Below, one piece after another: positions 2,509 to 34,732 of a DNA stretch of 64,000 nucleotides. The notes beneath the pieces are model-generated. The model was not told where the DNA came from. It saw only the letters and a program-made list of their open reading frames with translations, and made no database searches. Location of the stretch: positions 1 through 64,000 of IMG/VR virus record IMGVR_UViG_3300045971_000344; one strand, 5' to 3'. Within the stretch, counting starts at the first letter, position 1. Each line of letters opens with the position of its first letter. The position numbers and the translations under genes are program-made.

Positions 2509-2520
2509 AGAGGTAACTGT

Positions 2521-2718: not shown

Positions 2719-3158
2719 GAGTTATGTTTAATAGAGGTCCTGATGTAGTTGTTGCTCTTATAGAGCACAAAGAAAAGCCTGAGCATTTTCTTGTGCAGTA
2801 TAGAGCTCAAAGTAAACAATACTCAGGGTGGTTGGAATTCCCCGGTGGTAAAATGGAGCCGGGTGAAAATCCAGAATCAGCCTTATGCCGAGAAGTTAGG
2901 GAAGAAGTAGATATTACAATAGCCGGACACTGTAAGTTTGTGGAAATGGATTATTTATTCCCTTCTGGATTGTATCATAAAGTAATTTTCTACTTTGTTA
3001 AACCGGAGTACTGGATTAGAACACCTATCGGCATGGAGGGTCAGCGTATTGGATGGTTGACTTTGTTCCAGATAATGACCTATCCTAAAGTTTTGCCCTT
3101 AAATAGAGCAGCGGCATTAATATTAACTACAGAACGACATCCAGATATCCTGGAGTAA
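2715..3158 (+). CDS. NUDIX hydrolase (MutT-like)
   Basis: Nudix box GGKMEPGENPESALCREVREEVDI. Confidence 0.9.
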   Translation: MRVMFNRGPDVVVALIEHKEKPEHFLVQYRAQSKQYSGWLEFPGGKMEPGENPESALCREVREEVDITIAGHCKFVEMDYLFPSGLYHKVIFYFVKPEYWIRTPIGMEGQRIGWLTLFQIMTYPKVLPLNRAAALILTTERHPDILE

Positions 3159-3177
3159 CCAATATGGTGACAGCTCT

Positions 3178-5098: not shown

Positions 5099-5755
5099 AT
5101 GTTGGTAACAAAAATATTTCGATTCGAGGCCTGCCATTCAGTAAAAGACGCATACACTTGTAGATGTGACAGAACGCGGACAGATAAATCTGCCGGGGGC
5201 TTACACGGACATTCTTATGTTGTAGAGCTCACCCTTGAAGGGGATGTGGCAAAATCAGATGGAATGGTTATTGACTTCACTCTTGTTAGGGAAACTTTTA
5301 ACCATATAATTGATGCTTTTGACCACACTCTTGTTATTGGGGATACTGATAAAGTAATGGCAACCCTAGGTCCCTACATCTCAGCTCGTTATATAATTTT
5401 CCCTGGTAATCCAACTGCAGAGAATATGGCTGAATACTTCTTTAACTATCTTGATAGTTATCTTACTGACAACTACCTTTTAGGCGTAAGTGTATTCTCA
5501 GTAACCGTGTGGGAAACCGTTACAGGGAAAGCGACTAAGGTAAGAGAGATAAAAGGAGTTTTACCCAGTGACTTGTATATTAGTCCTGCCTTAGCTTATG
5601 GTTGGTCAGACTATGATAAGAAGACTTTTGAGTATAACAACGGACATATTTTAGAAGAAAAGCAGCTGATAACAAACATAACTACCCTAGATACAACTGA
5701 TTCTGCTGGTACTACCCTAAATTTTACTGCTACTCTTGGAAATAAAAACTGTTAA
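5099..5755 (+). CDS. queD: 6-carboxy-5,6,7,8-tetrahydropterin synthase (QueD/PTPS)
   Basis: TKIFRFEACH...LHGHSY...GMVIDF...FDH...NPTAENMA...VWET. Confidence 0.9.
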   Translation: MLVTKIFRFEACHSVKDAYTCRCDRTRTDKSAGGLHGHSYVVELTLEGDVAKSDGMVIDFTLVRETFNHIIDAFDHTLVIGDTDKVMATLGPYISARYIIFPGNPTAENMAEYFFNYLDSYLTDNYLLGVSVFSVTVWETVTGKATKVREIKGVLPSDLYISPALAYGWSDYDKKTFEYNNGHILEEKQLITNITTLDTTDSAGTTLNFTATLGNKNC

Positions 5756-5793: not shown

Positions 5794-7161
5794 ATTAGAC
5801 TATTCAGTCCAGAAACAGAGTTTAGAGTAATAGCTTCTATCTGCAATTCTCCTCCTAATTCAGTTACTACTACCTTTCTTTTATCCAGAATTACTACTGA
5901 GCACTTTCATTTTGATCCAGCAAAAGCCGCTTTTAAGCGAATAATGAAGTTGATGCAAACTAGTGGTAATATTCCTGGGTATAGAGAGTTAGAAGCTGAT
6001 CCAATATTGGATGAAGGCTTTAGAGCAGAAATATCTGCGTATGATGATAAAAAGAAAAAGATAAGACAAGAGAAAACCGCTAAGGCGGTATTTGATCTCT
6101 TAGAAAGCTATAGAAAAAAGAGGGTACTGTATAACGTAGCAAAGTCTACAATAGATAAATTAAAAGGCGAAGCTGTAGATGTAGACAGCCTTATACAGGC
6201 AATGGGTGATAATTTAGCTGTTGCAACCTCGGCTGTCTCAACAATTGAACAACTTGTCCACATAGGAGAAGGTAACAACAGCGTTGAGCTCGTTAAAGAG
6301 ATACTAGATGGAGAAGGTTCTCCAACTATTCCAACAGGTTTTAAGACGTTTGATGATAAAAATGGAGGATTCTTTAAGCAGGCAGTTGCGGTATTATCTT
6401 CAAATAGTTCAGGCGGTAAGTCCGTTTGCGCACTTCAGATGGCAATAAATATGTACTGGGCAGGGCAAAGCACTTGCGTACTCTCCTTAGAGATGAGTAA
6501 AGACCAGTACATGGCACGTTTCTTATCTAACATAAGTGGTGTATCTGCCTCAAGAATATTTTTGAAGAAACTTACTGAAGACGAAAAGAATGAAATACGA
6601 GCTGCCTATAAAAAGTTTGTTATCTTCGGAAAGAAAAATAATGTACGATGGACAATACTAGCCCCTGAAACTGGTTTATCACTTGACCAGTTACTTATGA
6701 CTTGTAAGCCCTATAGCTTTGACGTAGTAACAATTGACTATGCTACCTTATTAGAAGAGGCTGATGTAGATAACCAAGCACGAGCTTTGGCCTCAATTAC
6801 ACGCCGTTGTAAAGTATTCTCTCAAGTATCAAAATGTCTAGTTATAGTACTAGCTCAGTTGTCTGATGATGGGTTTATAAAATACAGTAGGGCGATAAAA
6901 GAAAATGCGGACCACGTTTGGACCTGGACTTTTTCCGATACGGAAAGAGAAACTCATAATATAACAATAAAAGTTGATAAAGGTAGAAACCAAATGTGTT
7001 TTCCTTTTGAAGTTACTGAAGATTTCTCAACTATGAGAATTATAGATAATGGACCCGTAAGATCATTCGATGAAGATACTGAAAACGAATTTTCAACAAA
7101 AAAGAAAAAGAAAGAGAAAGAAGAACCTGAAGATGATTATTTAGCGGAGGACGATATCTGA
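5794..7161 (+). CDS. dnaB: DnaB-like replicative helicase (probable ATT start at 5794)
   Basis: IPTGFKTFD, SNSSGGKS (Walker A), LSLEMS, VTIDY, VLAQLS, IKENAD, VDKGRN. The frame is open 50 codons upstream of ATG 5944 to an ATT downstream of GGGGAGGTG. Confidence 0.88.
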   Translation: MRLFSPETEFRVIASICNSPPNSVTTTFLLSRITTEHFHFDPAKAAFKRIMKLMQTSGNIPGYRELEADPILDEGFRAEISAYDDKKKKIRQEKTAKAVFDLLESYRKKRVLYNVAKSTIDKLKGEAVDVDSLIQAMGDNLAVATSAVSTIEQLVHIGEGNNSVELVKEILDGEGSPTIPTGFKTFDDKNGGFFKQAVAVLSSNSSGGKSVCALQMAINMYWAGQSTCVLSLEMSKDQYMARFLSNISGVSASRIFLKKLTEDEKNEIRAAYKKFVIFGKKNNVRWTILAPETGLSLDQLLMTCKPYSFDVVTIDYATLLEEADVDNQARALASITRRCKVFSQVSKCLVIVLAQLSDDGFIKYSRAIKENADHVWTWTFSDTERETHNITIKVDKGRNQMCFPFEVTEDFSTMRIIDNGPVRSFDEDTENEFSTKKKKKEKEEPEDDYLAEDDI

Positions 7162-9035
7162 TGATGAAAAAAGATCCGTTAAAGTCAGAGATTAGAAAAT
7201 TGAAGTCCCTACCTCTTGAGTCTCCTTTTGGAGTAATTGATGACCCACCACCATATAAATCAAAAAAGAAACAAAAAGAAACAATCTATATTCCTGAAAA
7301 AACAAGTTCTGATGTTCCCAAAGCAGCAAAATTAGGTCGTCTTCCAAAAGAAGTAGAAAAGATACAAGGTAAGATAGACAATCTGGTAAAGGTTCCTAAA
7401 GAGCAACTTGACCAATTCATGCAGGTCTATACAGATTCTAGCAAGGGTATAGCTAATGACTTTTTGACCCGAATAGCCCCTGTATTTTTATCCTTTGAAG
7501 ATGCAATGAGCTATTCAACCGTAGCTCTAAGGGATTGTTTGTCTTATGATGGTGAGATTGATCTTGAAATACTACCTCTTTTAGAATGGGCGGCACGTAT
7601 CTCTGTACTAGCAACATTTTTAGATAAATTAGGTTTACCTTACGTCTATAAAAAACGGTTTATGCAACTCTCAATAGCAAAGGCTGTTGAAAAAGCATTC
7701 TTAACTAAAAATTCTATGTTGGGGACAACTGTTGGAATCTCCGCACAGAATAGAGTAGCCGGAATAGTAAACACCCCAAATAAGACTACCACCACCCCAA
7801 ATGTTCCACCTGCGGCTATTCGGACACGGAATTTGAATACAAATCGGAAAACAAAATGATCCGCCATCTGCATATTTGTCCCTTACAAGCAGAATTTAAG
7901 TTCTATAATTGCTGTCCAATTCATTCTTGTCTTTATTACAGCAAAAAGTGTTTTTCTTGTTGCATAAAATTAGGTACAAAAGAATCAGATAACGATTCCA
8001 TAGGAATATCTAACTCAGAACTTTTATTCTATAAAGGATCCGATGAAATTAGATCAAGTAAACATATAGCTGATCTTAAAAAAGGGGGAATACTACGCAT
8101 ACAGCAAATTTATGGTTTCAATGCTTATTTAGATTTTATCCGTGAGAACTACTTTGACCTACGGACACATTTTACTCAAAAATTTAGCTTTGGAAGAAAA
8201 TTACGTTCAAAATGTATAAGTAACACCTTAGCTTTATATCCTTATAATGTAGACCTTTTTAAGATAACAAAAGCAGATTTAGTATTAATCTTAACAAATA
8301 ACGTCTATAGTTCATTTGTAAGTAGAAAAAAATTAGATTCAAATATTTTAGACTATTTCTTAATTATACATCTGTCAAAAGAGAGAGTGGAGAAAGTGCG
8401 GGCGGTACTAAAAAACTATTTTAGAAAAAAGGGGATAACACATGATTTCAGCGAAGAAAGCAATAAAGGGATTGGCCTCATTGAAAGTTAGCTCTCTTGA
8501 GGACAAAAGTTTAAAAGAAATTTGGGTCATAAACGAAACAAAGCCAAAAGGAATTATTATTCTTGATATTAAGAATAAAATGGACGGAAGTCCTACTTTG
8601 GTAACTATTCCTCCTACTTGGATTCCTATTTGTTTAACTGATCAGATACCCAAGTCTATGCTTACAGACAGCCCTAAATTCAGGTCGATTTTATCCTTGG
8701 GTCACATTAAGCTCCTTGATCCAAAAGGTGTTCATGAGATAATTGCAATACCTGAGATTGCAGAAGAGATTACTGCAATAAAGAATAAAACATCGGAAAT
8801 GTTTAAGGAACAACTTCCCGAGGCTATAAAGACAGAAGCGATTTCTGTAATTGTCCTGGATATCCTTTCAAGAGAAGAAAGTAAGACAATAACTGAATCT
8901 GAAGCAAAAGACATTTTGAATAACAAAGAAGATGAACTATCCAATGAAGATCTTGAGCACTTAATCAATAATAGTAACATGGCAAAAGTTAAGAAATGGG
9001 CCGCAGAAATGATTACCGATAGAGATTCAGAATAA
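7161..9035 (+). other. Three hypothetical CDS between helicase and primase (7161..7859, 7856..8491, 8442..9035)
   Basis: Overlapping co-oriented ORFs of 197-232 aa. Confidence 0.65.
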
Positions 9036-9042
9036 CATACAT

Positions 9043-9077
9043 AGGAGGGCGAGGGTCTCTGACCCTCGCTTCTATTC
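9043..9077 (+). promoter_or_regulatory. SD separated from the primase start codon by a 9-bp hairpin
   Basis: AGGAGG 9043-9048, GCGAGGGTC-TCT-GACCCTCGC 9049-9069, 8 nt, ATG 9078. Confidence 0.65.
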
Positions 9078-10067
9078 ATGAGTAATTTATCCGATACAAA
9101 CTCTGCGCTAGATATTATACTTGAAGAATTAGCTAAATACGGAGGGCAACAAAAAACGGGTACCTCTTATAGGCTCGTTGTTTGTCCTTTTCACTCTGAT
9201 AGCTCACCTAGCTTGAGTATAAACTTAAGTAAACCTGGCTTTAAAGTTGGTACCTTTAACTGTTGGAGCTGCCCTGCCTCAGGTAGTTGGAATAAATTTG
9301 CTGAAAAAACGGGCTTAAGAAAGATAAAAGACTGGCAGAATAAAGAACAAACAATATCTGAAATAAGTGCAGATGATGAAGCCCACTTGATGGGGTTTAG
9401 GTCAGAGACAGACTATGCAACGTCACTAGGCGTTGACGTAATAACGGACTGGTTTCCTAATAAATCCTGGAGAGGTTTTAGTGGAAAGCTTTTGGCCCGT
9501 ATTGGGGCAAAATTAGCTATAGACAGAGTAACCAATGACCCGGTGTTATTGTGTCCTGTTATAGTAAATAAGAAGAAGGTTGGTTACGTTAAGGCATTAC
9601 TTGAGAAAAAACAGGGTAGATTGGCTTACGTCTCCAGTAAAGGTCCTTGGACTAAAAACACCGCATTATTTCCTTTTGACTATGTAAAAGCCAAGATAAG
9701 AAAAATGGGTTTTGTTATACTTGTTGAAGGTCCAAGAGACGCATTGAGATTGATAACCGCAGGACTGCCTGCACTTGCTATTTTGGGTGTCCAAAATTTT
9801 GGGGACAAGAAAGCATTGATTTTGGCTTCACTTGGAATTGATATTTATGTAATGCCGGATAATGATGAAGCCGGAATTACTCTATATAAAAAGGCAAAGG
9901 AATCTTTTAAGAAGCTTGGAATATCCATAAAGCACATAAAACTTCCTAAAAAGAAAGATAAACAAGGAAGAATAATAAAGATGGACCCATGTTCTGCTCC
10001 AGATGAAGTAATAAATACCCTAAAAGAACAATTGGAGGATTACTATAATGGCGGAGCAGTTAGATAA
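9078..10067 (+). CDS. DNA primase (CHC2 zinc finger + TOPRIM)
   Basis: CPFHSDSSPS...FNCWSC; LVEGPRDAL; MPDNDEAG. Confidence 0.9.
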   Translation: MSNLSDTNSALDIILEELAKYGGQQKTGTSYRLVVCPFHSDSSPSLSINLSKPGFKVGTFNCWSCPASGSWNKFAEKTGLRKIKDWQNKEQTISEISADDEAHLMGFRSETDYATSLGVDVITDWFPNKSWRGFSGKLLARIGAKLAIDRVTNDPVLLCPVIVNKKKVGYVKALLEKKQGRLAYVSSKGPWTKNTALFPFDYVKAKIRKMGFVILVEGPRDALRLITAGLPALAILGVQNFGDKKALILASLGIDIYVMPDNDEAGITLYKKAKESFKKLGISIKHIKLPKKKDKQGRIIKMDPCSAPDEVINTLKEQLEDYYNGGAVR

Positions 10068-12565: not shown

Positions 12566-14065
<1,500 letters not shown>

Positions 14066-15496: not shown

Positions 15497-15988
15497 ATGG
15501 ATGTATCAACTATTGAAGACGCAATTTTAGTAAACCCAGAAGAAGAACAACCACTTGAGGAGCTTGATACTGCATATTATACTGTAGCTCAAATTCCTAT
15601 TGTAGGTGGAATAGTCTATATCGCCGTTAAGCACGGCTATACGATGGAGTCAAAGCCCTCAAAGAGCTTGGCTGACGTTGGAATGATGTTTGTTGAGGTA
15701 ACTGTAAATAATAGTCAAGGCGATTTTGTAGAGGCATTTGTCTTTGGTGCAACCTTTGAACTAGCAACAGAATACTTTCTTAATAAGAAAACGATAGGGG
15801 TAGACATTGAGATCGAACCGATGAATATCCCGTATTTTGATAAAAAGAAAGTAGGCTTTAGAAAACCCAAGCAAGTAAGTAGTACAACCGAAGGTAAAAA
15901 TGTTACCCAATATTTAGAAAACAAAAAGAAGTCTAATAGAAATGCTCGTAAAAAAGCTGCACTTTCAAAAAAGAAAAATAGAAAGTAA
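15497..15988 (+). CDS. Hypothetical protein with basic C-terminal tail
   Basis: ORF 163 aa. Confidence 0.6.
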   Translation: MDVSTIEDAILVNPEEEQPLEELDTAYYTVAQIPIVGGIVYIAVKHGYTMESKPSKSLADVGMMFVEVTVNNSQGDFVEAFVFGATFELATEYFLNKKTIGVDIEIEPMNIPYFDKKKVGFRKPKQVSSTTEGKNVTQYLENKKKSNRNARKKAALSKKKNRK

Positions 15989-16003: not shown

Positions 16004-16519
16004 ATGTCTATTCACGTTACTAAAGCACTCGCTAGAATCCAAAAGGCACACGATACGTTTAAGGGGTCGTTATTTTGTGGACACTCTGGAGGAAAAGACA
16101 GTACGGTTATCTTAGACCTTGCTCTAAAGGTTGACCCAGGAATAAAGATCATTCATAATAGTAAGGACTCAACTCATCTTGAGACTATATTATTCTTATA
16201 TGAGTTATCAAAAGTCCATACAGTGTTCTTTGTACCCGGAAAAGACATGCAGGAATTTTTAGAATCGAATGACCTCAGCTGCCAGATTGACGGGACGCGA
16301 ATTGCCGAGGCTACTAGAGAAGATGGAAGAAGTGTAGACCTGATCTCAAATGGAGAAAATCTTTCTAGAAGCGATATGAGGTTGTTTGAAAATCGCGGGT
16401 TGTATAACATGAGTATGTTATACCCAATATATGACTGGTCTGATGAGCAAATTTGGACCTATATTGTCCAGAATAACATACCAGTATCTAAAGAATATAA
16501 AGGGAACGGTTATGTCTAA
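16004..16519 (+). CDS. PAPS-reductase-family (PP-loop) protein
   Basis: CGHSGGKDSTVIL, IDGTRIAE, YPIYDWSDEQIWTYI. Confidence 0.8.
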   Translation: MSIHVTKALARIQKAHDTFKGSLFCGHSGGKDSTVILDLALKVDPGIKIIHNSKDSTHLETILFLYELSKVHTVFFVPGKDMQEFLESNDLSCQIDGTRIAEATREDGRSVDLISNGENLSRSDMRLFENRGLYNMSMLYPIYDWSDEQIWTYIVQNNIPVSKEYKGNGYV

Positions 16520-17324
16520 TATAATATTTGCCCCACACTGCGATGATGAGACAATCGGATGTTGGACCTTGTTGTCTGAAAGAAAAATAGACGCAGTATA
16601 CTATTTCTTTGAGCTTTCAGAACAACGTAGGATTGAGGCAAGAAACTGTGCTGAGATGTATGGTTTCTTGCCGTACTTTAATACTGGTAGTACTCTTTAT
16701 GCTTTTACTAGCTTGTGGGAACCTGGGGATACGGTCTATGTTCCTCATATTAAGGATAATCACCCTCACCATAAGACTATAAATCAGCTTGCTAAATCTG
16801 AGGCCTCCAAATTAGGATTGGTTTTAAAGTATTACTCAGTTGATATGAATACTAAAGAGCTGACCGTGTTAGAAAAAGGGAGCCAAAAGAGAGAGGACTT
16901 GATAACGCTCTTTCCTTCTCAGGACACTTTGTGGGGTGGTGACGATAAATATTGGTTATTTGAGAGTCTTTCAGATACTGACTTCAGCTCAAAGATTTTC
17001 ATAAAGACCACTTTTGAAGGGATTCATGCTTATCCAGCAGCACCTGAAGGTGTAGAATTTTTGGCACATCCACATAGGCATATTTTTCATGTAGAAATTA
17101 AGGTGGACGTGTTCCACCATGATAGGGAGATAGAATTTATCCTGTTTAAGCGAGAAATAGAGAATTACATAGTCGTTAACCTTAGGTCTTTACAGTACAA
17201 ATCTTGTGAAATGATCGCCGAAATGTTCTTGAATTACGTTATTTGTAAATATAAGAAAAGGTCTTGTAGTGTTATAGTTAGTGAAGATAATGAAAACGGG
17301 GCTGAGGTGTCCTATGTCTATTAA
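16512..17324 (+). CDS. PIG-L-family deacetylase fused to a T-fold QueD-paralog (DpdL-like) domain
   Basis: N-term FAPHCDDETIGC...HPHH; C-term FEGIHAYP...LAHPHRHIF...REIEF...SCEMIAE...VSEDNENGA (LxxxHRHxF). ATG 16512 is the likely start. Confidence 0.7.
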   Translation: MSNIIFAPHCDDETIGCWTLLSERKIDAVYYFFELSEQRRIEARNCAEMYGFLPYFNTGSTLYAFTSLWEPGDTVYVPHIKDNHPHHKTINQLAKSEASKLGLVLKYYSVDMNTKELTVLEKGSQKREDLITLFPSQDTLWGGDDKYWLFESLSDTDFSSKIFIKTTFEGIHAYPAAPEGVEFLAHPHRHIFHVEIKVDVFHHDREIEFILFKREIENYIVVNLRSLQYKSCEMIAEMFLNYVICKYKKRSCSVIVSEDNENGAEVSYVY

Positions 17325-18675
17325 GTCCTCAATTCCCTTAATGAATATCTTTGGACTAAATCCTACAAGTAAGAATATTCAAAAATTTTACATACCACAT
17401 TTTTCACAAGTTAAGTCTATTTATGGTAATACTAAAGAGACTCTTTTAGATGTAAAGAGCGTAATGTTTACCCGAGACGCGTGGGCCAATGTTGACTTTT
17501 GGAATAGCGATGCAGATGTAATGTACGTAGAAGATAGTTTAAGTTGGCGCGATGCTATGAATACTAGTGGAAACCATTTTGATTACTTCGATGGGTTCTT
17601 AAAGATTTATAGAGTAGCTCATAGTAATTTAGAGTTGGGCTTTGGCGAAAAAAATGACAACCATGTCCATGATATTTATGCTAATTTTCTAACTGCTGAC
17701 ATTTTATGGGTTAGTCCAATTGTATATGATAGAATTTTTCCTTTCTTGAAAAAGCTGTACTGTAGGTCCACGTTGGAGACTTTGAAAGCAAAAACAGTTT
17801 CATTACCGTATCCTGCGTTTTATAAAATTTCAAAAAATAAGGAGTTGGAAAAAACTCTTAGAATACATAAAGCAAAACCTTTAGTGTTTTTGTGGAATCA
17901 TAGACTAGTACCTAATAAAAACTATAAGGACTTTTGTACTATTCTTTGTGAATTGAATAGTCAACATCCTGAAATACCTTTTGAAATTCATTATGTTTGT
18001 GCCGAGCCCGAAGAAAACATACAAAAAGCTACGCCTAATCAGTTAAAGCCTTTTATTAAGTACGTGGGCTTTATTACAGATAAATCTACTTATGAAAAGG
18101 CTTTGAGGGATACTAACATAACAATAGCAACAGCTAAATTAGAAAGCTTTGGAAGTTCTGTTTTTGATGCAATTGGGTTAGGAGTACTTTTACTTAATCA
18201 GGATTGTAATGACGCCCTTTGCTCTTTGATTGGAAAGACCTATACTTTCTCTAAAAAAGACATGGTTGCTGCTATAGTAAAGGCATATAAGAGTAAAACT
18301 TATAGAGAAGAAATGCACGGGCACAACTTGGACGGGGTAAACTCTCTATTGAAGAATGCTCCTGAAAAGGTATTGTCTGAAAAAATAAATGAGTATTTTT
18401 CAGTAAAGAAACAGCAAGGCCCTGTTAAGTCACGTGTTCTTTCAGACGCATTACGAGCATTGGAAAAGACTGCTTTAACAAAGAAACAGCTGTTTCAAGC
18501 TGTAGGATGGAATGTTGCTAAAAATCCTGTAAATGCTCACTGGGCGGGTTACTACTACGCACTTCGCCGAGAAAATGTAAATATTAGTTTAGTAAACGGT
18601 ATACAATACTTTCATTTAACAGCTAAGCCAGAAGTAAGAGAAGCAGCTCTTAAAAAGAAAGGATTATTTTCATGA
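17314..18675 (+). CDS. GT-B (GT4-like) glycosyltransferase with extra C-terminal domain
   Basis: FLWNHRL..NKN, TAKLESFGSSVFDAIGLG (ExFG motif). Confidence 0.75.
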   Translation: MSIKSSIPLMNIFGLNPTSKNIQKFYIPHFSQVKSIYGNTKETLLDVKSVMFTRDAWANVDFWNSDADVMYVEDSLSWRDAMNTSGNHFDYFDGFLKIYRVAHSNLELGFGEKNDNHVHDIYANFLTADILWVSPIVYDRIFPFLKKLYCRSTLETLKAKTVSLPYPAFYKISKNKELEKTLRIHKAKPLVFLWNHRLVPNKNYKDFCTILCELNSQHPEIPFEIHYVCAEPEENIQKATPNQLKPFIKYVGFITDKSTYEKALRDTNITIATAKLESFGSSVFDAIGLGVLLLNQDCNDALCSLIGKTYTFSKKDMVAAIVKAYKSKTYREEMHGHNLDGVNSLLKNAPEKVLSEKINEYFSVKKQQGPVKSRVLSDALRALEKTALTKKQLFQAVGWNVAKNPVNAHWAGYYYALRRENVNISLVNGIQYFHLTAKPEVREAALKKKGLFS

Positions 18676-19094
18676 AGATAGGATATGAAGTTGAGGGAAG
18701 GCTAAAGGGAGTAAGATCATTATTTTTAGATGTTTCCGAATTGGATAAATTTTATGAGCACTTTGTACGATGTAACTGCATAAAGACAGTACATGAAGTA
18801 TGTCAGATCTATGTATCTGACCATTCAAATACTTTAGACTTATTTAGTATTAAGCTTCTTAACCTTTCAAAAGAATTTTTACTGACAGTTGAAGTAACAG
18901 AACTCAAGGTGGATCCGCCTCGGTATATAAATACTATGTTGTGTATAGACTCACCTAGTTTCTGGTTTTTACGGAGCATTGACCAAATTAAGATCTCTAA
19001 GGATCTTAGAGTGTTTTCTACAACGGTTGAGAATATGAGTATAACAAACCCTGAAGAATTTAAAAATGATACTGAGGTAACCTTACATGGCTAG
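18672..19094 (+). CDS. Hypothetical protein within the modification cluster
   Basis: Coupled between the two glycosyltransferases. Confidence 0.65.
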   Translation: MKIGYEVEGRLKGVRSLFLDVSELDKFYEHFVRCNCIKTVHEVCQIYVSDHSNTLDLFSIKLLNLSKEFLLTVEVTELKVDPPRYINTMLCIDSPSFWFLRSIDQIKISKDLRVFSTTVENMSITNPEEFKNDTEVTLHG

Positions 19095-20187
19095 AATTAT
19101 ATATATCCCTATTGAACCGCTCCAAGAGCGTTACTCACAGCAGTGGTACGATAATTTTCCGAAAGCCTTTAAGACCCAGGGTTATGAGACAATAGTTATT
19201 GATGGTATTGTCTTGTCTGATACGGTTGAAGTTGGAACTTTTTTGGATATAAATTCAACCATACACTATAAGTGCGCACAACTTCAAACTATCTCCAAGA
19301 TGTTTAGATCAAAGCAAATACAGGACGGTGATATATTCTTTTTTGGGGACTTAGAATTTTGGGGTATAGAAAGCGTACGCTTACTTGCAGATCTAAACCA
19401 GGTCGATATTAAGATAACCGCATTTTTACACGCCGCGTCTTATACTATTGAGGATGCCTTTGCAATAGCAGAACCTTATCAGCGGTATACTGAGGTTGGA
19501 TGGATTTCGATCTGTGATTTTGTCTTTGTAGGATCTGAGTATCATAAACAAGCTGTAGTAGACCGAAGACTTGCCCCAGTAAACCGGTTGGACCTAGCTG
19601 ATAGAATTGTTGTAACAGGTAACCCTCTTTGGAAAGAAGACTATGCACTTACTAGTGTCCCGGAGAAAAGGGACCAACTTATCATAAGTAATAGATTCGA
19701 TTGGGAAAAGAGGCCCAATTTAAGTTTGGACTTCGCATATATTCTTAAGAAGAGAAATCCAGATTTGCAGATTATGATAACTACCAGTAGGAACGAATTT
19801 AAGTCAAATAAGCAGTGGTTAGTTGACTACGCAACAGCTTTAGAAAAAGATGGTATTGTAACAATAAAGAGTGGACTGTCTAAAGCAGAGTACCATGAAA
19901 TTTTGGCGCAGAGTAAAGTAATGCTAACAAACTCTATTGAAGAGAATTTTGGGTATTGTATTATTGAGAGCTGTGTCTATAATACTTATCCTGTGCTAAA
20001 GAACGCGCTTTCACATCCAGAATTGGTCCAAGGTGATGAACGGTTATTGTTTAACGATGAAGACGAAGTTGTTAGCAAGATCGAGCGTCTCTTAAGCGCA
20101 GATTTTTCTGTTGTACACTATGCAGAAAACTATTTTTACAGTATAGATAGAATAATGACCTATATAAATACTTTAAGTCCGTGTTAA
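19087..20187 (+). CDS. GT-B (GT4-like) glycosyltransferase
   Basis: ISNRFDWEKRP, YHEILAQSKV..TNSIEENFGYCIIES, HPELV. Confidence 0.85.
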   Translation: MARIIYIPIEPLQERYSQQWYDNFPKAFKTQGYETIVIDGIVLSDTVEVGTFLDINSTIHYKCAQLQTISKMFRSKQIQDGDIFFFGDLEFWGIESVRLLADLNQVDIKITAFLHAASYTIEDAFAIAEPYQRYTEVGWISICDFVFVGSEYHKQAVVDRRLAPVNRLDLADRIVVTGNPLWKEDYALTSVPEKRDQLIISNRFDWEKRPNLSLDFAYILKKRNPDLQIMITTSRNEFKSNKQWLVDYATALEKDGIVTIKSGLSKAEYHEILAQSKVMLTNSIEENFGYCIIESCVYNTYPVLKNALSHPELVQGDERLLFNDEDEVVSKIERLLSADFSVVHYAENYFYSIDRIMTYINTLSPC

Positions 20188-20200
20188 ATCGAGGTAGTAT

Positions 20201-21682
20201 ATGTCTTATAGTTTTGTGCCAGCAGCAATAGATTCTTTCGATGCTCGAGGAATGACCTTGTACGTTAAGTATACTAAGTCAAAGTCAAATAACGTCTTTA
20301 TTAAAGAGGACAACCCTAGATACACTTGGTTTATTTGCCCTGACCGAGAGCTCTTAATAGTTAAGAATACAGCACAAGAGTATCACCCTGCAGGTGAAAA
20401 CTTTGATGAGGCTATAAATCTAGATGTTTATGATGATAGAGTCTTACAAGAACTGGGCACCGATATCTATATGCTAAATAGTGGTGCCTTTGGAGACAAC
20501 CCAGAGAGGAGTCCGAGGCTTAGGCGTAATGGAAGAAATCCAAAGTTGGTCCAACCACATATTTTAGCAGACTCCGGAGGATTTCAGATTTTATCCGGGC
20601 GAACGGACTACATTGACCCTATAAAAGTAGTAGAATGGTATAACGAAAATACCGACTGGGGAATGGTATTGGACGTTCCACCAATTGTTTCTGATTGGGA
20701 CAACGTTAAACGCGGTGCTCGTATCCAGGCAAAAAATACTGAAATAATGTTTAAGCACAAAACTAAAGAGCTTGAACTTGTAAATGTTATCCAAGGATTT
20801 GACTCTAAGCAACGTGCCGCATTTTTAGACATGGTTGACCACCCGGAAATAAATAGGCTCGCTATAGCCGGCTCTTATAGGATTGAAAATCTTGTAGAGC
20901 GAATAACTGATATACTTAAGATTATTCACCTTGATAGAAAATTCAAGCATTACCATATTCTTGGTATCTATAGTTTGACCACGCTTTTACCTTTGATTCA
21001 GATCTCTAATTTGTCTACAGTAAATGCGCTTATAACTTCGGACGCAAGTACTCCCTTACAAAGTGCAGTTAATAAATTTTATCATCACCAACAAAGTATT
21101 TTTTCCCCAGAAAGGCGGCTACCTATTGGGCATAAAGATATCGTCTATAACTCACGTCTATATCTTCCCTGTCATTGCCCAGTATGTAGTGCAGTTAAAT
21201 ACCAGAATATTTTTAGTTTCGTAGATACTGGAGTTATAACGGCTCTTTTAACTTTGCACAACCTTTATGAGATTAATCGCTATACATCTATGATGAATGA
21301 GTTATCTCAAACAATAAGCTATAAAGAATATAGATCTATAACTCGGCATCAACTAGGCGGTCGAGCTCCGGCCACACTTCAAGCTCTGGATCTTATCCAT
21401 GAGTATTCAAAAGATCCAGATAAAGCGTTTAAGATCTATTCAGCTATAAATACAGGCTCTATGTTATTCAAGCCCTCACCTTTATACAAAGATATTTCTG
21501 ATACACCAATAGCGTTATTGGTAAAAGGTAATGGAGGAATTGAGAGAAAAGAAGAGACTGCGGAAGAAATGGTCGAACGCCAAAAGAGAGTATTACATAA
21601 CTACGAATCACGTTATAAAATAAAACCCAAGGATAACACAAAGAAAAAGAAAAAGAAGAAAAAATCTAAGGTAAAAGGATGA
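20201..21682 (+). CDS. Guanine transglycosylase (TGT/DpdA-like)
   Basis: ADSGGFQ, VLDVPP, VIQG, HILGI, SDAS, Zn site CHCPVC...HNL. Confidence 0.85.
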   Translation: MSYSFVPAAIDSFDARGMTLYVKYTKSKSNNVFIKEDNPRYTWFICPDRELLIVKNTAQEYHPAGENFDEAINLDVYDDRVLQELGTDIYMLNSGAFGDNPERSPRLRRNGRNPKLVQPHILADSGGFQILSGRTDYIDPIKVVEWYNENTDWGMVLDVPPIVSDWDNVKRGARIQAKNTEIMFKHKTKELELVNVIQGFDSKQRAAFLDMVDHPEINRLAIAGSYRIENLVERITDILKIIHLDRKFKHYHILGIYSLTTLLPLIQISNLSTVNALITSDASTPLQSAVNKFYHHQQSIFSPERRLPIGHKDIVYNSRLYLPCHCPVCSAVKYQNIFSFVDTGVITALLTLHNLYEINRYTSMMNELSQTISYKEYRSITRHQLGGRAPATLQALDLIHEYSKDPDKAFKIYSAINTGSMLFKPSPLYKDISDTPIALLVKGNGGIERKEETAEEMVERQKRVLHNYESRYKIKPKDNTKKKKKKKKSKVKG

Positions 21683-23298
21683 CCCGTATGGCTCCAAAAA
21701 CTGTTGCTAAAAAAGAAATGTCTAAACAAGACATCGTTAAAGAGAAACTTAAAAAAGTAAAAGATAAAAAGAGTAAGAAGGAAGAAGTACCTGTTGAGGA
21801 TAACAAGAAAAGCAAGAAAAAGAGTAAGGGTGATGAAGCTGTGGACGAACTTGTTGAGATCAAGAAGGGTAAGAAAAAGGCAGTAAAGGTTGTGGATGCA
21901 ATAAAAGAAAAGAAAAGTAAGAAGGAAGAAGCAAAGGCAATTTTGAACTGCGCGGTAGACTATGGTGACGTCATGGATGGTATCGAGAAAAAGTACGATA
22001 CTGGAAGTAGTCAGCTAACATCTGATCCTCGTGCTAAATTAAGCATCGGCCTGCTTTCTTTAGACCTTCTTCTTAATGGGGGAGTTTTAGGTGGGGGTTG
22101 GTATACCTTTTTCGGGCAAGAGCAATCAGCAAAATCCACCCTTGCAATGCTAACCTTAGTTTCTGCCTTAAATACCGATGTACCTTTGCTTGGATACTAT
22201 GATTACGAAGGCAGTTCTAGTTATGACTACATCTCAAATATAATGAAAAGCATGAATGTAAAAGGAAACATAGAAAATATTTTTGGCTTAAGAGATGATG
22301 AAGGACATTGGTTGATAAAGCCCAGAGTGCGTTACTATCAGCCAAGTACAGCCGAAGCATTTTTCGATTCAGTAGCTAAATTGCTTAGAGCACTACCGGA
22401 TATAAAGATGATAGGCGATAAGCAGTACTATGTTTATCCAGATGAGAAGACTGTTAGAGCTAAGATAAAAACCTGGGATGAAAAACTTCTTAAAAAGACA
22501 GGTCAGCTATATGTTGAGACATCCAGTTATATAAAGCACCAAGCAATCTTTGTAGTTGACTCTTATCCTGCGATGCTTCCTGAGAAGCAAGACGAAGATG
22601 ATCCAGGTTCAGCAATGGCTGTCCAGGCGCGTATGTTCAGTGAACAAATCAAGCGCATAAAGGCCCGCCTTAAGCCAAAGAAAGTTACTATCATTGGTAT
22701 TAACCAGATCCGTTTGAAGCCCGCAGTTATTTATGGTTCGCCTGAGTATGAACCTTGTGGTGAAGCTTTAAAGCTATTCAGTGATGCTCGTATTCGCTGT
22801 GCCTCTAGATCTATACCGCATGGTAAGGGAGCTATTGAAGAAGAACCTAGTGCAACAGGTGAAGGTATTGACACTTATCGCTATGTTGCATGGCGTACGC
22901 AGAAAAATAAATTGGGAGGAATTCCTAATTCAGAAGCCTGGGGCCGTATCTGGGTTTCAAATAACGAAGGTCAAGGTTGTGGTTTCTGTCCGGTTTTTGA
23001 CGTTTACGAATTTTTAAAAATGACGGGCCAAATAAGTGGTTCCAGAAATAAACTTGTGCTTACTATCCCCCAGTTTAAAGGGTTGAAGGCTAAGTTAAGT
23101 TGGATGCAATTCAAGGTCCTTGTTATCGGTAAGAAAGAGCAGGTTGAAAAGGTATACAAACAGATTGGGTATAAAGATAAATACTTTAACCTACGAAAAG
23201 AGTGCTTTAAACAGTTTGAAAAGGGTGTTGCTACTAAAATGTATTTGGACAAGAAAGTGAAGAACGTAGATGCTAAGGGAGACGAAGATGAGGATTGA
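21679..23298 (+). CDS. RecA/UvsX-like recombinase with Lys-rich N-terminal extension
   Basis: SIGLLSLDLLLNGG, GQEQSAKST, VVDS, INQIRLK..YGSPEYEPCGEALK. Confidence 0.85.
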   Translation: MTRMAPKTVAKKEMSKQDIVKEKLKKVKDKKSKKEEVPVEDNKKSKKKSKGDEAVDELVEIKKGKKKAVKVVDAIKEKKSKKEEAKAILNCAVDYGDVMDGIEKKYDTGSSQLTSDPRAKLSIGLLSLDLLLNGGVLGGGWYTFFGQEQSAKSTLAMLTLVSALNTDVPLLGYYDYEGSSSYDYISNIMKSMNVKGNIENIFGLRDDEGHWLIKPRVRYYQPSTAEAFFDSVAKLLRALPDIKMIGDKQYYVYPDEKTVRAKIKTWDEKLLKKTGQLYVETSSYIKHQAIFVVDSYPAMLPEKQDEDDPGSAMAVQARMFSEQIKRIKARLKPKKVTIIGINQIRLKPAVIYGSPEYEPCGEALKLFSDARIRCASRSIPHGKGAIEEEPSATGEGIDTYRYVAWRTQKNKLGGIPNSEAWGRIWVSNNEGQGCGFCPVFDVYEFLKMTGQISGSRNKLVLTIPQFKGLKAKLSWMQFKVLVIGKKEQVEKVYKQIGYKDKYFNLRKECFKQFEKGVATKMYLDKKVKNVDAKGDEDED

Positions 23299-23334: not shown

Positions 23335-24037
23335 ATGAGTGAGATCGTGAATGAAGGTAAGAGTGTAATGTTTGTAGATAAAAAGGTGTGCTTGATTTGT
23401 ACCCACTTGGTAGGGGCTGAACTGGGTAAGAAGACTAAGTCTTGTACTGCCAAGAAAGGTAATACTAAATGCCCTGCACAGTATTACACAATCGAGATTG
23501 GTTTTGACGTAAACCAAATCCTAAGTGACTTCTACAATGCTCTAGCAGTAGGTGACGTAGCTCAAATGATGAAGATACTGGCTGAAGCACAGACCAATCC
23601 AAAGGTTGAGGCAACTATTGTCCAGGATCTAAAGGATCGTTTGTTTGAACCTACTTCCCCTTCAGAAGCCGCTGTTGAAGCTCTTGTAGTAGACTCTTCA
23701 GCTGAAGAGGATGAAGATGAGGATGAGGATGTAGACTAATCTAGTTTAACCTTAGATTACTGTTAATAACTTATGGCTCTGGCTCAGTTTGTCAGAGCCA
23801 TAATCTTATCTTACGTAAGGAGAAATACATTCTATGACTCGAACAGTAGAAATCTTTATAGATGGGTTATGGCAACCTATTACAATTGATCTTATAGTTA
23901 AGGGAGACCGCTTTAGACTAATTGAACCTGATGGATCATTTGTTACAGATGAAGAAGGAAACTCAGAGTGGGTGGCAAAAGCAGATAGCTTTTATAGTGA
24001 AATTTATAAAGATCATATAGTAGAAATAGAGGTGTAG
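23335..24037 (+). other. Two hypothetical CDS (23335..23739, 23834..24037) separated by an 11-bp hairpin (23771-23803)
   Basis: ORFs with RBS; TTATGGCTCTG/CAGAGCCATAA inverted repeat. Confidence 0.6.
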
Positions 24038-31927: not shown

Positions 31928-32101
31928 CTACTTTATACCTAAATTTTTACCTGAATTCCATTAAAATTAACCCGAATTCCATGAAAAAACCTCATAAAAT
32001 AACCCATTTCTATGGGTGTTTTATGCGATAAAAACCCCTTAGGGGTCAAAAACCGTAGTATTTTGCATAGGTTACCAAGAAAACGAACCTTTTAGGTAAT
32101 T

Positions 32102-32130
32102 TTGACATTTGGGTAAAAATTTGATAAAAT
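32102..32130 (+). promoter_or_regulatory. sigma70-type promoter
   Basis: TTGACA-17-TAAAAT with TGn extended -10. Confidence 0.8.
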
Positions 32131-32227
32131 AAAATTGAAGGGGAATAGAAAAAGGAATACATCACGAATTTTCGCAGATTTGCGAAATCATTACAAACCC
32201 AAAGAGTTGTACGAAAAGGAGATCATC

Positions 32228-33055
32228 ATGGCACGCACAGCAAAAATTTCGGCAATCGCAGCAGTTGAGACGCTCACATCTAACGCTACATCATCCAAAA
32301 AGGAGAACACCATGAAAACCAACGCTATCGAGATCATCTTCACCCCGGCCAAATCGCTTGTCGCTATCGTAAACCCCGCAACTCCGGCCGTTGTCGTTCC
32401 CGAAGTCGCAGTCGAAGCAGTTGCTCCGAAGCGCACCCGCAAAGCAAGAGTTGTTGCCCCGGTTGTGGTCGCAGTTGTTGAAGAGCCCAAGAAGCGCACT
32501 CGCAAGACAAACAAGATCGCAACTCCGGTTGAGGTCGCTGAAGTCGTGGTAGTCGCTCCGAAGCGTGAGCGCAAAGCAAAAGTCGGCGTTAACTTCGAGA
32601 ACGAACTCGGCATGATCTTCAAACCCGCATCGCAGTTCAAGAAAGCGCTGTCCGCAACTCCGGTAGTCGAGGTCGAGGCAGTTGCTCCGAAACGCACTCG
32701 CAAGTCCTCCAAGATCGCAACTCCGGCAGTCGAGGTTGCAGAAGTGGTTGTTGAAACTCCGAAGCGTGGTCGCAAGGCAAGAGTTGCAGTCGAAGTCGAA
32801 GTCGTAGCAGCTCCGGTATCGGCCAAAGTTATCTCGATGGACGAGCATCGCGCACGCCGCAGCATGAAGGCCCTGGCAGAAGTTTCGGAAAAAATCATCT
32901 CCGCAGATTCCGAAAAGGCAGCAAAAAAGTTCTTCAAGAAGTATGTTGCTGAAGTCGGTATCGAAGATGCAGCACGCAACCTGCGTTACATCCTCCGCAA
33001 GCTGAACTCCGAAAAAGCAACAGAGTTGTTCGCTCAGTACAGCGTTAACCAGTAA
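32228..33055 (+). CDS. Ala/Val/Pro/Lys-rich repeat protein (histone H1-like); second in-frame start at 32312
   Basis: VEAVAPKRTRK-type repeats; AAGGAG before both ATGs. Confidence 0.7.
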   Translation: MARTAKISAIAAVETLTSNATSSKKENTMKTNAIEIIFTPAKSLVAIVNPATPAVVVPEVAVEAVAPKRTRKARVVAPVVVAVVEEPKKRTRKTNKIATPVEVAEVVVVAPKRERKAKVGVNFENELGMIFKPASQFKKALSATPVVEVEAVAPKRTRKSSKIATPAVEVAEVVVETPKRGRKARVAVEVEVVAAPVSAKVISMDEHRARRSMKALAEVSEKIISADSEKAAKKFFKKYVAEVGIEDAARNLRYILRKLNSEKATELFAQYSVNQ

Positions 33056-33166
33056 CAGTTGTTCAACCTCGGCGAGAGGGAATGGTTTTATCTACATTCC
33101 CTCTCGACACTCTTTCATTTTCACTTATCGATCCATGCAGTACAAATTAACTAAAGGAGAATTATC

Positions 33167-34603: not shown

Positions 34604-34732
34604 AATCATTCTGATCTGAATTGTGGGGGAGAGCGTTTTGGTGCTCTCCCCATTCAGAGTTTTTGGCTGTGGTAAGCGCCCTTTACAGGGCCTTTATCAG
34701 ATTCAAAAAACCTGAGAAATGAGGATTACACC

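Follow-up and report, generated by a model that had tools for sequence, protein, structure and literature searches.

The locus examined here raises the question of whether a phage can extend the known exchange of guanine in DNA for a 7-deazaguanine base by attaching a sugar to the exchanged base. It lies within a 64,000-nucleotide stretch of jumbo phage DNA (hereafter the window), the first 64 kb of the 294,944-bp IMG/VR contig IMGVR_UViG_3300045971_000344. A sequence-only reading had proposed that a deazaguanine base-exchange system is functionally joined here to two glycosyltransferases and an N-deacetylase in a combination not previously described. The gene content was re-examined, the distribution of the module was surveyed in cultured phages and viral contigs, and the resulting functional model was compared with its alternatives and with known systems.

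Gene content of the locus

All six open reading frames of the span are confirmed (Table 1), and they are translationally coupled. Start and stop codons overlap at four of the five internal junctions (PP-loop/PIG-L, PIG-L/GT1, GT1/orphan and orphan/GT2), only 13 nt separate GT2 from the TGT-like gene, and the TGT stop also overlaps the start of UvsX; no convincing terminator lies inside the span. The fusion gene and GT1 most likely start at internal ATG codons, at 16512 and 17314, respectively. No FolE, QueE or QueC was found within the 64-kb window.

Table 1. Coordinates, predicted products and profile hits of the features discussed in the text.
Coordinates	Strand	Open reading frame	Predicted product	Profile hits
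5099-5755	+		QueD/PTPS-like T-fold enzyme (6-carboxytetrahydropterin synthase-like)	Pfam PTPS 1.2e-25; NCBIfam QueD 7.3e-20 (71 bits, below the 89-bit equivalog cut-off)
16004-16519	+	16004-16519	PP-loop ATP pyrophosphatase of the PAPS-reductase / FMN-adenylyltransferase / CysD family	Pfam PAPS_reduct 1.5e-13 (51.6 bits, cut-off 22.5)
16512-17324	+	16431-17324	PIG-L/LmbE-type zinc N-deacetylase (about residues 1-155) fused to DpdL, a QueD-like T-fold (about residues 160-270)	Pfam PIG-L 0.0024 (weak); phrog_17812 1.3e-24 on the C-terminal third
17314-18675	+	17281-18675	GT1, GT4-like GT-B glycosyltransferase with a C-terminal extension of about 90 aa	Pfam Glycos_transf_1 2e-4 (below threshold); NCBIfam best match SdgA 4.7e-7
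18672-19094	+	18672-19094	Orphan alpha/beta protein of 140 aa, function unknown	No Pfam, PHROG or NCBIfam hit
19087-20187	+	19087-20187	GT2, GT4-family GT-B glycosyltransferase with EX7E motif	Pfam Glycos_transf_1 3.9e-12 (46.5 bits, cut-off 26.4)
20201-21682	+	20201-21682	TGT-superfamily base-exchange transglycosylase (DpdA-like) with a lysine-rich C-terminal tail	Pfam TGT 1.5e-6 (28.0 bits, cut-off 26.3)

The first gene had been read as a member of the PAPS-reductase family. The PP-loop motif SGGKDS is invariant in 10 homologs, but no C-terminal cysteine is conserved, so the protein is an ATP pyrophosphatase-type enzyme rather than a sulfonucleotide reductase; the earlier suggestion of a sulfur-activated sugar is consequently not supported. 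A profile search against PDB returned FAD synthase (1.3e-8) and CysD (1.5e-8), followed by TtuA and GMP synthase. The enzyme is predicted to adenylate an oxygen (carboxylate, carbonyl or phosphate) of the pathway intermediate.

The T-fold of the fusion protein is specifically a homolog of DpdL, the proposed 7-carboxy-7-deazaguanine decarboxylase of Cellulophaga phage phiST (PMC10516641), although DpdL activity has never been demonstrated, even for phiST. The C-terminus is 37-46% identical to DpdL of phiST, ACP17 and X1; it carries the DpdL signature LxxxHRHxF as LAHPHRHIF, and all invariant residues are kept. The AF2 model (pLDDT 89) matched E. coli QueD (4ntk) in Foldseek with probability 1.0 and TM 0.68. 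The N-terminal part contains the motifs APHCDDE and HPHH, and all 11 family members hit Pfam PIG-L (best 6.2e-6); as single sequences, however, PIG-L and GT1 fall below Pfam gathering thresholds, and Foldseek with the two-domain model did not list LmbE structures.

The structural neighbours of GT1 in the ESM atlas are GT4 families (TM 0.6-0.76). In GT2, E286 and E294 are invariant, and the N-terminal acceptor domain is strongly conserved; the family has at least 5662 clusters at 90% identity. The atlas places GT2 nearest to tRNA-queuosine mannosyltransferase (QTMAN) clusters among named families (TM 0.81; 18 of 100 feature hits), but this similarity is fold-level only, since 0 of 34 family members hit QTMAN_N. 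The orphan protein has 304 clusters at 50% identity among 1.84 billion proteins; its AF2 model (pLDDT 77) gave no PDB fold match, and the atlas search was uninformative. The transglycosylase has all catalytic and zinc residues; D124-S-G-G, D158, D281, C324, C326, C329 and H353 are invariant in 29 homologs, and its best PDB sequence match is ArcTGT (1iq8). The separate QueD-like gene is a conserved core gene of this phage clade and sits next to a MutT-like NUDIX gene in sister contigs, with orthologs in the same position in contigs L003 and L004; it has an HGH motif, and the aligned Cys23 is invariant, but this copy has a 9-residue insertion before HGH.

Conservation of the module in other phages

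The module is not an accident of this genome. In Xanthomonas phage X1 the module comprises FolE, PP-loop, PIG-L, orphan, GT2, TGT, DpdL and QueE; in Burkholderia phage BCSR5 it comprises DpdL, PP-loop, PIG-L, orphan, GT2, TGT, QueE and FolE. The same set is shown by the metagenomic viral loci L017-L019, L030, L256 and L257. Homologs of the PP-loop protein hold the same module position in X1, BCSR5, L017-L030, L256 and L257, and the orphan, a constant member of the long module always just upstream of GT2, has homologs in X1, BCSR5, L017-L020, L027, L030, L256 and L257. GT1 occurs only in a subset of the long modules; homologs of 37-58% identity lie in the same module in L256, L257 and a 59-kb JGI contig, whereas no hit was obtained in GenBank phages. 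PIG-L is fused to DpdL in at least 5 loci, including L017, L022, L025 and L256.

Of 79 viral loci recruited through GT2, 73 carry DpdL within the flanks, 64 carry FolE, 59 carry QueE and 67 carry a transglycosylase; likewise, 18 of 18 GenBank phage records with a GT2 homolog also have DpdL. Conversely, 56 of 80 loci recruited through DpdL carry GT2. Of the 24 without it, 19 have the phiST-like gene order and no GT, 7 of them with a detected DpdA3, and 4 are cut off just after DpdL; the phiST-like class is the one in which plain 7-deazaguanine DNA was measured. GT2 pairs with five different transglycosylase types, which ties it to the base rather than to one enzyme. Within the literature that could be searched, no paper was found that links deazaguanine DNA with these enzymes.

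A proposed pathway to a glycosylated deazaguanine

Comparative genomics strongly supports the central idea of the sequence-only reading. The span is best explained as the long form of a widespread, chemically uncharacterised class of phage 7-deazaguanine DNA-modification clusters, defined by DpdL plus a dedicated GT4 glycosyltransferase, GT2. This interpretation is more likely than not, but every chemical step, the order of steps, the identity of the sugar and the attachment atom are inferred, in the absence of chemical data for any GT2-class phage. In the proposed course, GTP is turned into 7-carboxy-7-deazaguanine by GTP cyclohydrolase I, the phage QueD and QueE, with FolE and QueE supplied by the host or by the unseen 231 kb of the genome. 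The DpdL domain processes this base (for the phiST homolog, the proposed reaction is decarboxylation to 7-deazaguanine), the TGT-like enzyme exchanges guanine in phage DNA for the deazapurine, and GT2 attaches a sugar to the deazapurine either before or after insertion. In this long form the sugar is probably an N-acetyl-hexosamine that the fused PIG-L domain de-acetylates to a free amine; the PP-loop enzyme then uses ATP to activate an oxygen function for attack by, or coupling to, that amine, and GT1 adds a second sugar. As a caveat, 7-deazaguanine itself has no obvious hydroxyl or amine handle at C7; if DpdL really decarboxylates, the attachment point is unclear. The alternative that a second base is modified is not supported, since nothing in the window points to a modified pyrimidine.

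Two observations on other phages are consistent with this model. PA5oct carries TGT, GT2, DpdL and QueE, and its virion DNA resists restriction enzymes whose sites contain G (PMC12191111). The dpdA and dpdL genes of ACP17, expressed without the intervening GT gene, gave no dDG in E. coli, and the authors suggested that other enzymes may be required (PMC10516641). On the other hand, sister phages keep the TGT-like gene and QueD without any GT or DpdL, so the transglycosylase can work without the module.

Alternative interpretations

A possible but less likely alternative is that the DNA carries only a plain 7-deazaguanine (dDG or a close derivative), while GT2, PIG-L, the PP-loop enzyme and GT1 work on the free base or a pterin precursor to make a soluble glycoside – a storage, export or detoxified form, or a nucleoside-antibiotic-like effector – that never enters DNA. 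DpdL was modelled as acting on the free base (PMC10516641), and its fusion to PIG-L points to small-molecule chemistry; the accessory genes in short clusters resemble aminoglycoside and nucleoside-antibiotic tailoring enzymes (class-B-like and SPASM radical SAM enzymes and a Zn-dependent alcohol dehydrogenase), and pterin glycosides, including glucosamine-bearing ones, appear to exist in nature. However, GT2 is almost always directly adjacent to a DpdA-type gene, often with overlapping start and stop; a cluster-3 DpdA-like ORF accompanies GT2 in 63 of 79 loci, usually directly after it, and the genes are also adjacent in the window, X1 and BCSR5. A base modified before insertion would still be compatible with DNA incorporation, because TGT enzymes generally accept bulky C7 substituents such as queuine, and there is no export or resistance gene in the module.

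It is doubtful that GT2 and the other module proteins are needed for DpdL or DpdA to work but leave no sugar in the final product, for example by making a transient glycosyl or adenylyl intermediate or by serving as a structural partner. The inactivity of ACP17 dpdA plus dpdL would fit this view, and phiST-class clusters reach dDG without a GT but use a different transglycosylase, DpdA3; yet the EX7E catalytic glutamates and about 30 other positions are invariant across the GT2 family, and a deacetylase and a second GT make little sense for a transient handle.

Modification of tRNA rather than DNA, of the queuosine or archaeosine type, is unlikely. The sequence matches are to tRNA enzymes (ArcTGT, Pfam TGT), and the substrate cannot be read from the sequence; but the gene is a core gene of the DNA replication and recombination module in sister phages, next to primase, PD-(D/E)XK nuclease, SSB and UvsX, the only tRNA of the window is Leu(TAA), which is not a TGT substrate, phage TGT homologs found in deazaguanine clusters are DNA enzymes in every tested case (PMC10516641), and the restriction resistance of PA5oct DNA also speaks against it. 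Equally unlikely, and already disfavoured, is an unrelated role in modifying another DNA base, capsid proteins or host envelope glycans: GT4 enzymes are common in phage surface-glycan clusters (PMC7824862), and GT1 and PIG-L are weak single-sequence hits, but synteny with DpdL, DpdA, FolE and QueE holds in well over 100 independent loci, the deacetylase is fused to DpdL, no GenBank phage record has GT2 without DpdL, and no sugar-nucleotide synthesis or membrane genes lie in the module.

Relation to known systems

Among the closest known systems is the 7-deazaguanine pathway of phiST, with FolE, QueD, QueE, DpdL and DpdA3 (Cui, Hutinet et al., NAR 2023, PMC10516641). It shares with the locus a DpdL homolog with the same signature and the same invariant His and Glu residues, a QueD-like gene and a TGT-superfamily transglycosylase, and no QueC was seen. 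The transglycosylase here, however, is a 493-aa Zn-binding TGT of another subfamily, not the 259-aa DpdA3; DpdL is fused to a deacetylase, and the two glycosyltransferases, the PP-loop ATPase and the orphan protein do not occur in phiST-class clusters. The DpdA preQ0 and G+ systems of phages and bacteria (phage 9g, CAjan, Vibrio nt-1 and Achromobacter phage Motura) likewise use a base-exchange enzyme of the TGT superfamily set in the replication region; the Motura homolog (28% identical) lies inside a QueC-AsnB-TGT-QueE-FolE cluster. No QueC, Gat-QueC, ArcS or QueF is found here; DpdL and sugar-handling enzymes are present instead. The transglycosylase was not assignable to the named DpdA1-4 subfamilies with the data at hand.

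In animal tRNA, queuosine is glycosylated to mannosyl-Q by QTMAN/GTDC1 and to galactosyl-Q by QTGAL. Both there and in the proposed pathway a GT4-type GT-B enzyme would put a sugar on a 7-deazaguanine derivative in a nucleic acid, although the tRNA substrate offers a cyclopentenediol hydroxyl as acceptor; this is an analogy of logic, not family membership. A GT4 glycosyltransferase working with a PIG-L/LmbE zinc deacetylase is, by established precedent, the standard pair for transferring and then de-acetylating GlcNAc: MshA/MshB in mycothiol, BshA/BshB in bacillithiol, PIG-A/PIG-L in GPI-anchor and BtrM/BtrD in aminoglycoside synthesis. In the thiol pathways an ATP-dependent ligation onto the freed amine follows, which parallels the PP-loop enzyme, although the ATP enzyme here is of the PAPS-reductase/FMNAT family and not a Cys ligase, and the acceptor is presumed to be a deazapurine or DNA rather than inositol, malate, a lipid or an aminocyclitol.

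The glucosyl- and arabinosyl-hmC of T-even phages and base J offer a parallel for the biological role, in that a post-replicative sugar decoration of a modified base, made in T4 by GT-B-fold DNA glycosyltransferases, would serve as an anti-restriction shield. Those bases are pyrimidines with a hydroxymethyl acceptor, made from modified dNTPs or by oxidation, whereas the base here is a purine analogue installed by base exchange. Phages with this module may decorate a purine in their DNA with a sugar; the result would be a glycosylated, probably amino-sugar-bearing, 7-deazaguanine in virion DNA that blocks restriction and other DNA-targeting defences.

Gene content of the span

The six open reading frames reported by the sequence-only reading between 16004 and 21682, together with a QueD/PTPS-like gene elsewhere in the window, were confirmed (see table). 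Overlapping stop and start codons occur at four of the five junctions inside the span; the TGT-like gene is preceded by a 13-nt gap with a GAGG, and an ATGA overlap leads from it into the UvsX recombinase gene that follows. Promoter and terminator scans inside the span gave nothing above the shuffled background, and no convincing terminator lies inside it; the first convincing terminator-like site is a strong hairpin downstream, suggesting that the module is co-transcribed with UvsX and the next small gene. A megablast of the span against 50,697 GenBank phage records found no match.

Coordinates and family matches of the features discussed in the text (bit scores are followed by the cut-off; contigs and phage loci other than the window are named in the first column)
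Sequence	Position	Strand	Feature	Family match or remark
Window	2715-3158		MutT-like NUDIX gene
Window	3178-4128	+	316-aa PAS + GGDEF protein, putative diguanylate cyclase	GGDEF motif at residue 231
Window	5099-5755		QueD/PTPS-like gene	NCBIfam QueD equivalog, 71.2 bits (89.25)
Window	12566-14065		499-aa protein after the sigma factor	lysine-rich C-terminal tail
Window	15497-15988		unknown 163-aa protein just upstream of the module	lysine-rich C-terminal tail
Window	16004-16519	+	PP-loop protein	PAPS_reduct 1.5e-13, 51.6 bits (22.5)
Window	16431-17324	+	PIG-L~DpdL fusion protein; most likely start ATG 16512	N-terminal PIG-L 0.0024 (weak), 19.5 bits (28.2); C-terminal phrog_17812 1.3e-24
Window	17281-18675	+	first glycosyltransferase (GT1); most likely start ATG 17314	Glycos_transf_1 2e-4, 21.3 bits (26.4)
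Window	18672-19094	+	140-aa orphan protein	no family
Window	19087-20187	+	second glycosyltransferase (GT2)	Glycos_transf_1 3.9e-12, 46.5 bits (26.4)
Window	20201-21682	+	TGT-like protein	TGT 1.5e-6, 28.0 bits (26.3); lysine-rich C-terminal tail
Window	21679-23298	+	UvsX/RecA-like recombinase gene
Window	23771-23803	+	hairpin	13-bp stem followed by a T-rich run
Window	32001-36000		rise in G+C	0.47-0.49, against 0.35-0.40 in the first 32 kb
Window	54186-54272	+	tRNA-Leu (anticodon TAA)	only tRNA in the 64 kb
L256 (related contig)	17640-20297		RecA gene	intein with a LAGLIDADG endonuclease
L014 (Vibrio phage Bakedbeans gp176)	6218-7369		DpdL fused to an unknown N-terminal region of about 260 aa	no Pfam hit in the N-terminal region
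L013 (Rhizobium phage RHph_I1_18)	7405-8229		DpdL and a macro-domain (Appr-1-p processing) gene directly following it
L042; L061; L053; L031 (short GT2-class clusters)	8658-9998; 2371-3762; 8493-9413; 8917-9978		450-aa class-B-like radical SAM enzyme, SPASM or twitch radical SAM enzymes, or Zn-dependent alcohol dehydrogenase	between DpdL and GT2

Identification of the encoded proteins

The TGT-like protein keeps every hallmark of the tRNA-guanine transglycosylase superfamily; in an alignment of 29 homologs, including those of Achromobacter phage Motura and Burkholderia phage BCSR5, the residues D124-S-G-G, D158 and D281 and the zinc ligands C324, C326, C329 and H353 are invariant, and the DSGGFQ and CHCPVC motifs align with their counterparts in archaeosine TGT 1iq8 (CSCPVC at the zinc site). 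An HMM built from DpdA3 of Cellulophaga phage phiST does not hit this protein. Its lysine-rich tail ends KKKKKKKKSKVKG; this and the tails of the 163-aa and 499-aa proteins are possibly non-specific DNA-binding tails.

The protein with a PAPS reductase domain has a PP-loop SGGKDS that is invariant in 10 homologs, yet no cysteine is conserved in its C-terminal part, where the ECGLH-type catalytic motif would be expected; the window protein ends ...KEYKGNGYV, and all CysH and APS-reductase NCBIfam scores are far below their cut-offs. By profile its nearest solved relatives are FAD synthase (FMN adenylyltransferase), CysD, TtuA and GMP synthase. It is therefore treated as an ATP pyrophosphatase that adenylates a substrate oxygen, and not as a sulfonucleotide reductase or sulfur-transfer enzyme.

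In the N-terminal half of the fusion protein, the PIG-L/LmbE motifs APHCDDE and HPHH are present, with A7, P8, H9, D11, D12, E13, H84 and H87 invariant in 11 homologs, and both motifs align with the LmbE-family structure TT1542 (1uan). Each single sequence falls below the Pfam threshold, but all 11 hit PIG-L (best 6.2e-6) and share no other family; Foldseek with the two-domain model listed only generic Rossmann-like folds for this half. The C-terminal half is 37-46% identical to a small phage protein that includes CGPG_00067 of phage phiST, which was named DpdL and proposed as the decarboxylase that turns 7-carboxy-7-deazaguanine (CDG) into the 7-deazaguanine found in place of all G in phiST DNA; it was defined by the signature LxxxHRHxF in place of CxxxHGH in QueD (PMC10516641). 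The window protein reads LAHPHRHIF and keeps all invariant residues of the family; L32, H36, H38 and F40 are invariant in the alignment with phiST CGPG_00067 and the homologs in ACP17, X1, BCSR5 and PA5oct. An AlphaFold model (pLDDT 89) matches E. coli QueD (4ntk) with Foldseek probability 1.0 and TM 0.68.

GT2 is a clear GT4-type GT-B enzyme, with the EX7E glutamates E286 and E294 invariant in 34 homologs and a strongly conserved N-terminal domain. GT1 is weak by sequence; most of its homologs carry a precomputed PF00534 hit and its structural neighbors in the ESM atlas are GT4 families (TM 0.6-0.76), so that it is GT-B-like, with only probable membership in the GT4 family. The 140-aa orphan forms 304 clusters at 50% identity among 1.84 billion proteins; its predicted small alpha/beta model (pLDDT 77) has no Foldseek match in the PDB (best E 0.1, TM below 0.35), and its atlas scores were below 0.7. 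In the QueD-like protein, HGH is present and the aligned Cys23 is invariant, but 12 residues separate them in this copy, whereas the sister contig L003 has CxxxHGH.

Genomic surroundings

The region upstream of the span is a replication module with genes for a DnaB helicase, a primase, a PD-(D/E)XK nuclease, a sigma factor, the lysine-rich 499-aa protein and a DnaJ protein; the rise in G+C further downstream probably marks the change from the replication and modification module to another module. A scan of IMG/VR with the TGT-like protein as a single sequence found nothing, and alignment-based scans were needed. The TGT-like gene is a core gene of the replication module in related jumbo phages, namely the P. 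putida phages of the Voja-6 group, Vibrio phages GR7B and GR11A, Xanthomonas PhiXhv phages and phage NCTB, at 30-35% identity. In the closest metagenomic relatives (48-55% identity), the gene order is NUDIX, PTPS, DnaB, primase, PD-(D/E)XK, TGT, sigma factor, with no glycosyltransferase and no DpdL. These relatives (L003, L004, L005) keep the QueD-like gene as well as the TGT-like gene, and neither they nor Voja-6 and GR7B (L001, L002) have DpdL, QueE, QueC or a glycosyltransferase nearby. In L003 and L004 the NUDIX gene is directly followed by PTPS, so that the putative diguanylate cyclase between the two in the window is a lineage-specific insertion of a c-di-GMP-type signaling gene in a phage. 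A more distant homolog of the TGT-like gene in Achromobacter phage Motura lies inside a complete QueC, AsnB-like, TGT, QueE, FolE cluster that was already read as a deazaguanine DNA system (PMC7824862). The transglycosylase and the QueD-like gene are thus ancestral to the clade, and the sugar module is an accessory set that sits next to the transglycosylase.

Recurrence of the gene combination

In GenBank phages, GT2 homologs occur in 18 records, every one of which also has DpdL; DpdL occurs in 29 records. Xanthomonas phage X1 carries FolE, PP-loop, PIG-L, orphan, GT2, TGT, DpdL and QueE in one row, and Burkholderia phage BCSR5 carries DpdL, PP-loop, PIG-L, orphan, GT2, TGT, QueE and FolE. A shorter set of GT2 next to DpdL was found in PA5oct-like phages, ACP17, Synechococcus phage BUCT-ZZ01 and Sinorhizobium phage Phosso, with a TGT-type gene alongside in PA5oct and ACP17.

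A scan of IMG/VR with a GT2 alignment gave 79 loci besides that of the window, and HMMs built from the annotated phage genes found DpdL in 73 of these, FolE in 64, QueE in 59 and QueD in 52; of the six loci without DpdL, four are cut off by a contig end beside GT2, and a fifth has under 2 kb upstream of its module. In 63 loci, a 336-aa ORF with no Pfam hit accompanies GT2, and in most of them it follows GT2 directly; profile-profile comparison shows it to be DpdA-like (hhalign probability 83%, E 8.6e-6), with motifs DSGA, LD, HGF and SvDS. Overall, 67 of the 79 loci have a recognizable transglycosylase, and these are of five different types, which ties GT2 to the base rather than to one enzyme. 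The converse scan with DpdL found at least 585 stretches, of which the best 80 were kept; 56 of these have GT2. Of the 24 without it, 19 have the phiST-like order QueE, QueD, FolE, DpdL, followed by DpdA3 where one was detected (7 loci), 4 are truncated just after DpdL, and 1 has full flanks but no GT2. There are thus two classes of DpdL cluster, the DpdA3 class in which plain dDG was measured, and a larger GT2 class for whose product no report was found. A scan of 185,579 cellular genomes with two motif patterns of the long-type GT2 found no relative.

The long form of the module, in which PP-loop, PIG-L and orphan accompany GT2, occurs in X1, BUDD, BCSR5 and the contigs L017-L019, L027, L030, L256 and L257; the PIG-L domain is fused to DpdL in the window and in the contigs L017, L256, L022 and L025. 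GT1 has no GenBank phage homolog, but its metagenomic homologs (37-58% identity) lie in the same module, in the order TGT, GT1, PP-loop, PIG-L~DpdL, orphan, GT2 in L256 and GT1, PP-loop, PIG-L, orphan, GT2, DpdL, FolE, TGT in L257. The gene set of the window is therefore a recurring eight-part unit, not a local accident. Short clusters carry other tailoring genes between DpdL and GT2; the class-B-like radical SAM enzyme, encoded by a gene of roughly 1.3 kb, has its best NCBIfam matches in PhpK and AprD4. The tailoring genes belong to families used to tailor amino sugars in aminoglycoside and nucleoside-antibiotic pathways, and suggest several different tailored sugars or base substituents across phages.

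Inferred pathway

The chemistry of the module is inferred from the enzymes, their catalytic motifs, operon coupling, synteny and fusions. In the most likely course, CDG is made from GTP by FolE, QueD and QueE and is processed by DpdL; the TGT-like enzyme exchanges G in phage DNA for the deazapurine, and GT2 adds a sugar to it. In the long form, this sugar would be an N-acetyl-hexosamine that is de-acetylated by PIG-L, in keeping with the universal role of the GT4 plus PIG-L pair in mycothiol, bacillithiol, GPI-anchor and aminoglycoside synthesis. The PP-loop enzyme would activate an oxygen function with ATP for reaction with an amine, the common chemistry of QueC, TilS, NAD synthetase and GMP synthase, or alternatively make an ADP-linked intermediate as FMN adenylyltransferase does; GT1 would add a second sugar. 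The fusion of the deacetylase to DpdL argues that both see the same sugar-deazapurine conjugate. As a caveat, 7-deazaguanine has no obvious acceptor group at C7, so that either the acceptor is CDG or another intermediate, or the linkage is unusual (C- or N-glycosidic), or DpdL, whose decarboxylase activity is undemonstrated even for its founding member, does something other than proposed; moreover, FolE, QueE and QueC were not found within the 64-kb window of this 294,944-bp IMG/VR contig. Two published experiments fit the inferred pathway. PA5oct carries TGT, GT2, DpdL and QueE, and its DNA resists enzymes whose sites contain G, although the modification itself is unidentified (PMC12191111); and dpdA plus dpdL of ACP17, expressed without the glycosyltransferase gene that lies between them, gave no dDG (PMC10516641).

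Comparative genomics supports the interpretation of the sequence-only reading, which had joined deazaguanine exchange to glycosylation and deacetylation, with the exception of its suggestion of a sulfur-activated sugar. It is very likely that the module belongs to the deazaguanine pathway, whereas the presence of a sugar-bearing deazapurine in virion DNA is at best slightly more likely than not.

Comparison with known systems

The span would work like, and is in part a member of, the phage 7-deazaguanine (Dpd) systems, with membership of the TGT superfamily and of the DpdL family supported by sequence and fold. GT2 resembles tRNA-queuosine mannosyltransferase (QTMAN) in the ESM atlas (TM 0.81; 18 of 100 feature hits), but none of 34 GT2 family members matches the QTMAN_N domain (PF12038) at E<=1, and the resemblance is an analogy only. 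Full-text searches returned no paper describing the combination, although a description elsewhere cannot be ruled out since most subscription journals lay outside the search; the 2023 DpdL paper does not contain the words glycosyl or PAPS (PMC10516641), and a 2026 review still speaks only of predicted deazaguanine incorporation in jumbo phages.

Implications for phage DNA modification

All known 7-deazaguanine DNA modifications (preQ0, preQ1, G+, ADG, CDG, DG and methyl- or formyl-preQ1) are small, and all known sugar-bearing DNA bases are pyrimidines; a sugar-decorated deazapurine would be a new chemical class of DNA hypermodification. It is about as likely as not that phages of the GT2 class, which spans at least 5662 GT2 protein clusters at 90% identity, carry the first known glycosylated purine in DNA, a 7-deazaguanine bearing a sugar and, in the long form, an amino sugar further elaborated by an ATP-dependent step and a second sugar. 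Such a base would be a DNA counterpart of the mannosyl- and galactosyl-queuosine of tRNA, and would also explain why DpdL plus DpdA alone failed to reconstitute the modification; it offers a concrete, testable answer to the question left open in the 2023 DpdL paper, namely which "other unknown enzymes" are needed. New DNA glycosyltransferases and a bulky, enzyme-installable purine label would also be of interest for tool development. The GT2-DpdL pairing is very common in viral metagenomes and in cultured phages of Pseudomonas, Xanthomonas, Burkholderia, Acidovorax, Sinorhizobium and Synechococcus; it could therefore account for unexplained restriction resistance, for example in PA5oct, and could also explain sequencing artefacts and sensitivity to defences that depend on DNA modification.
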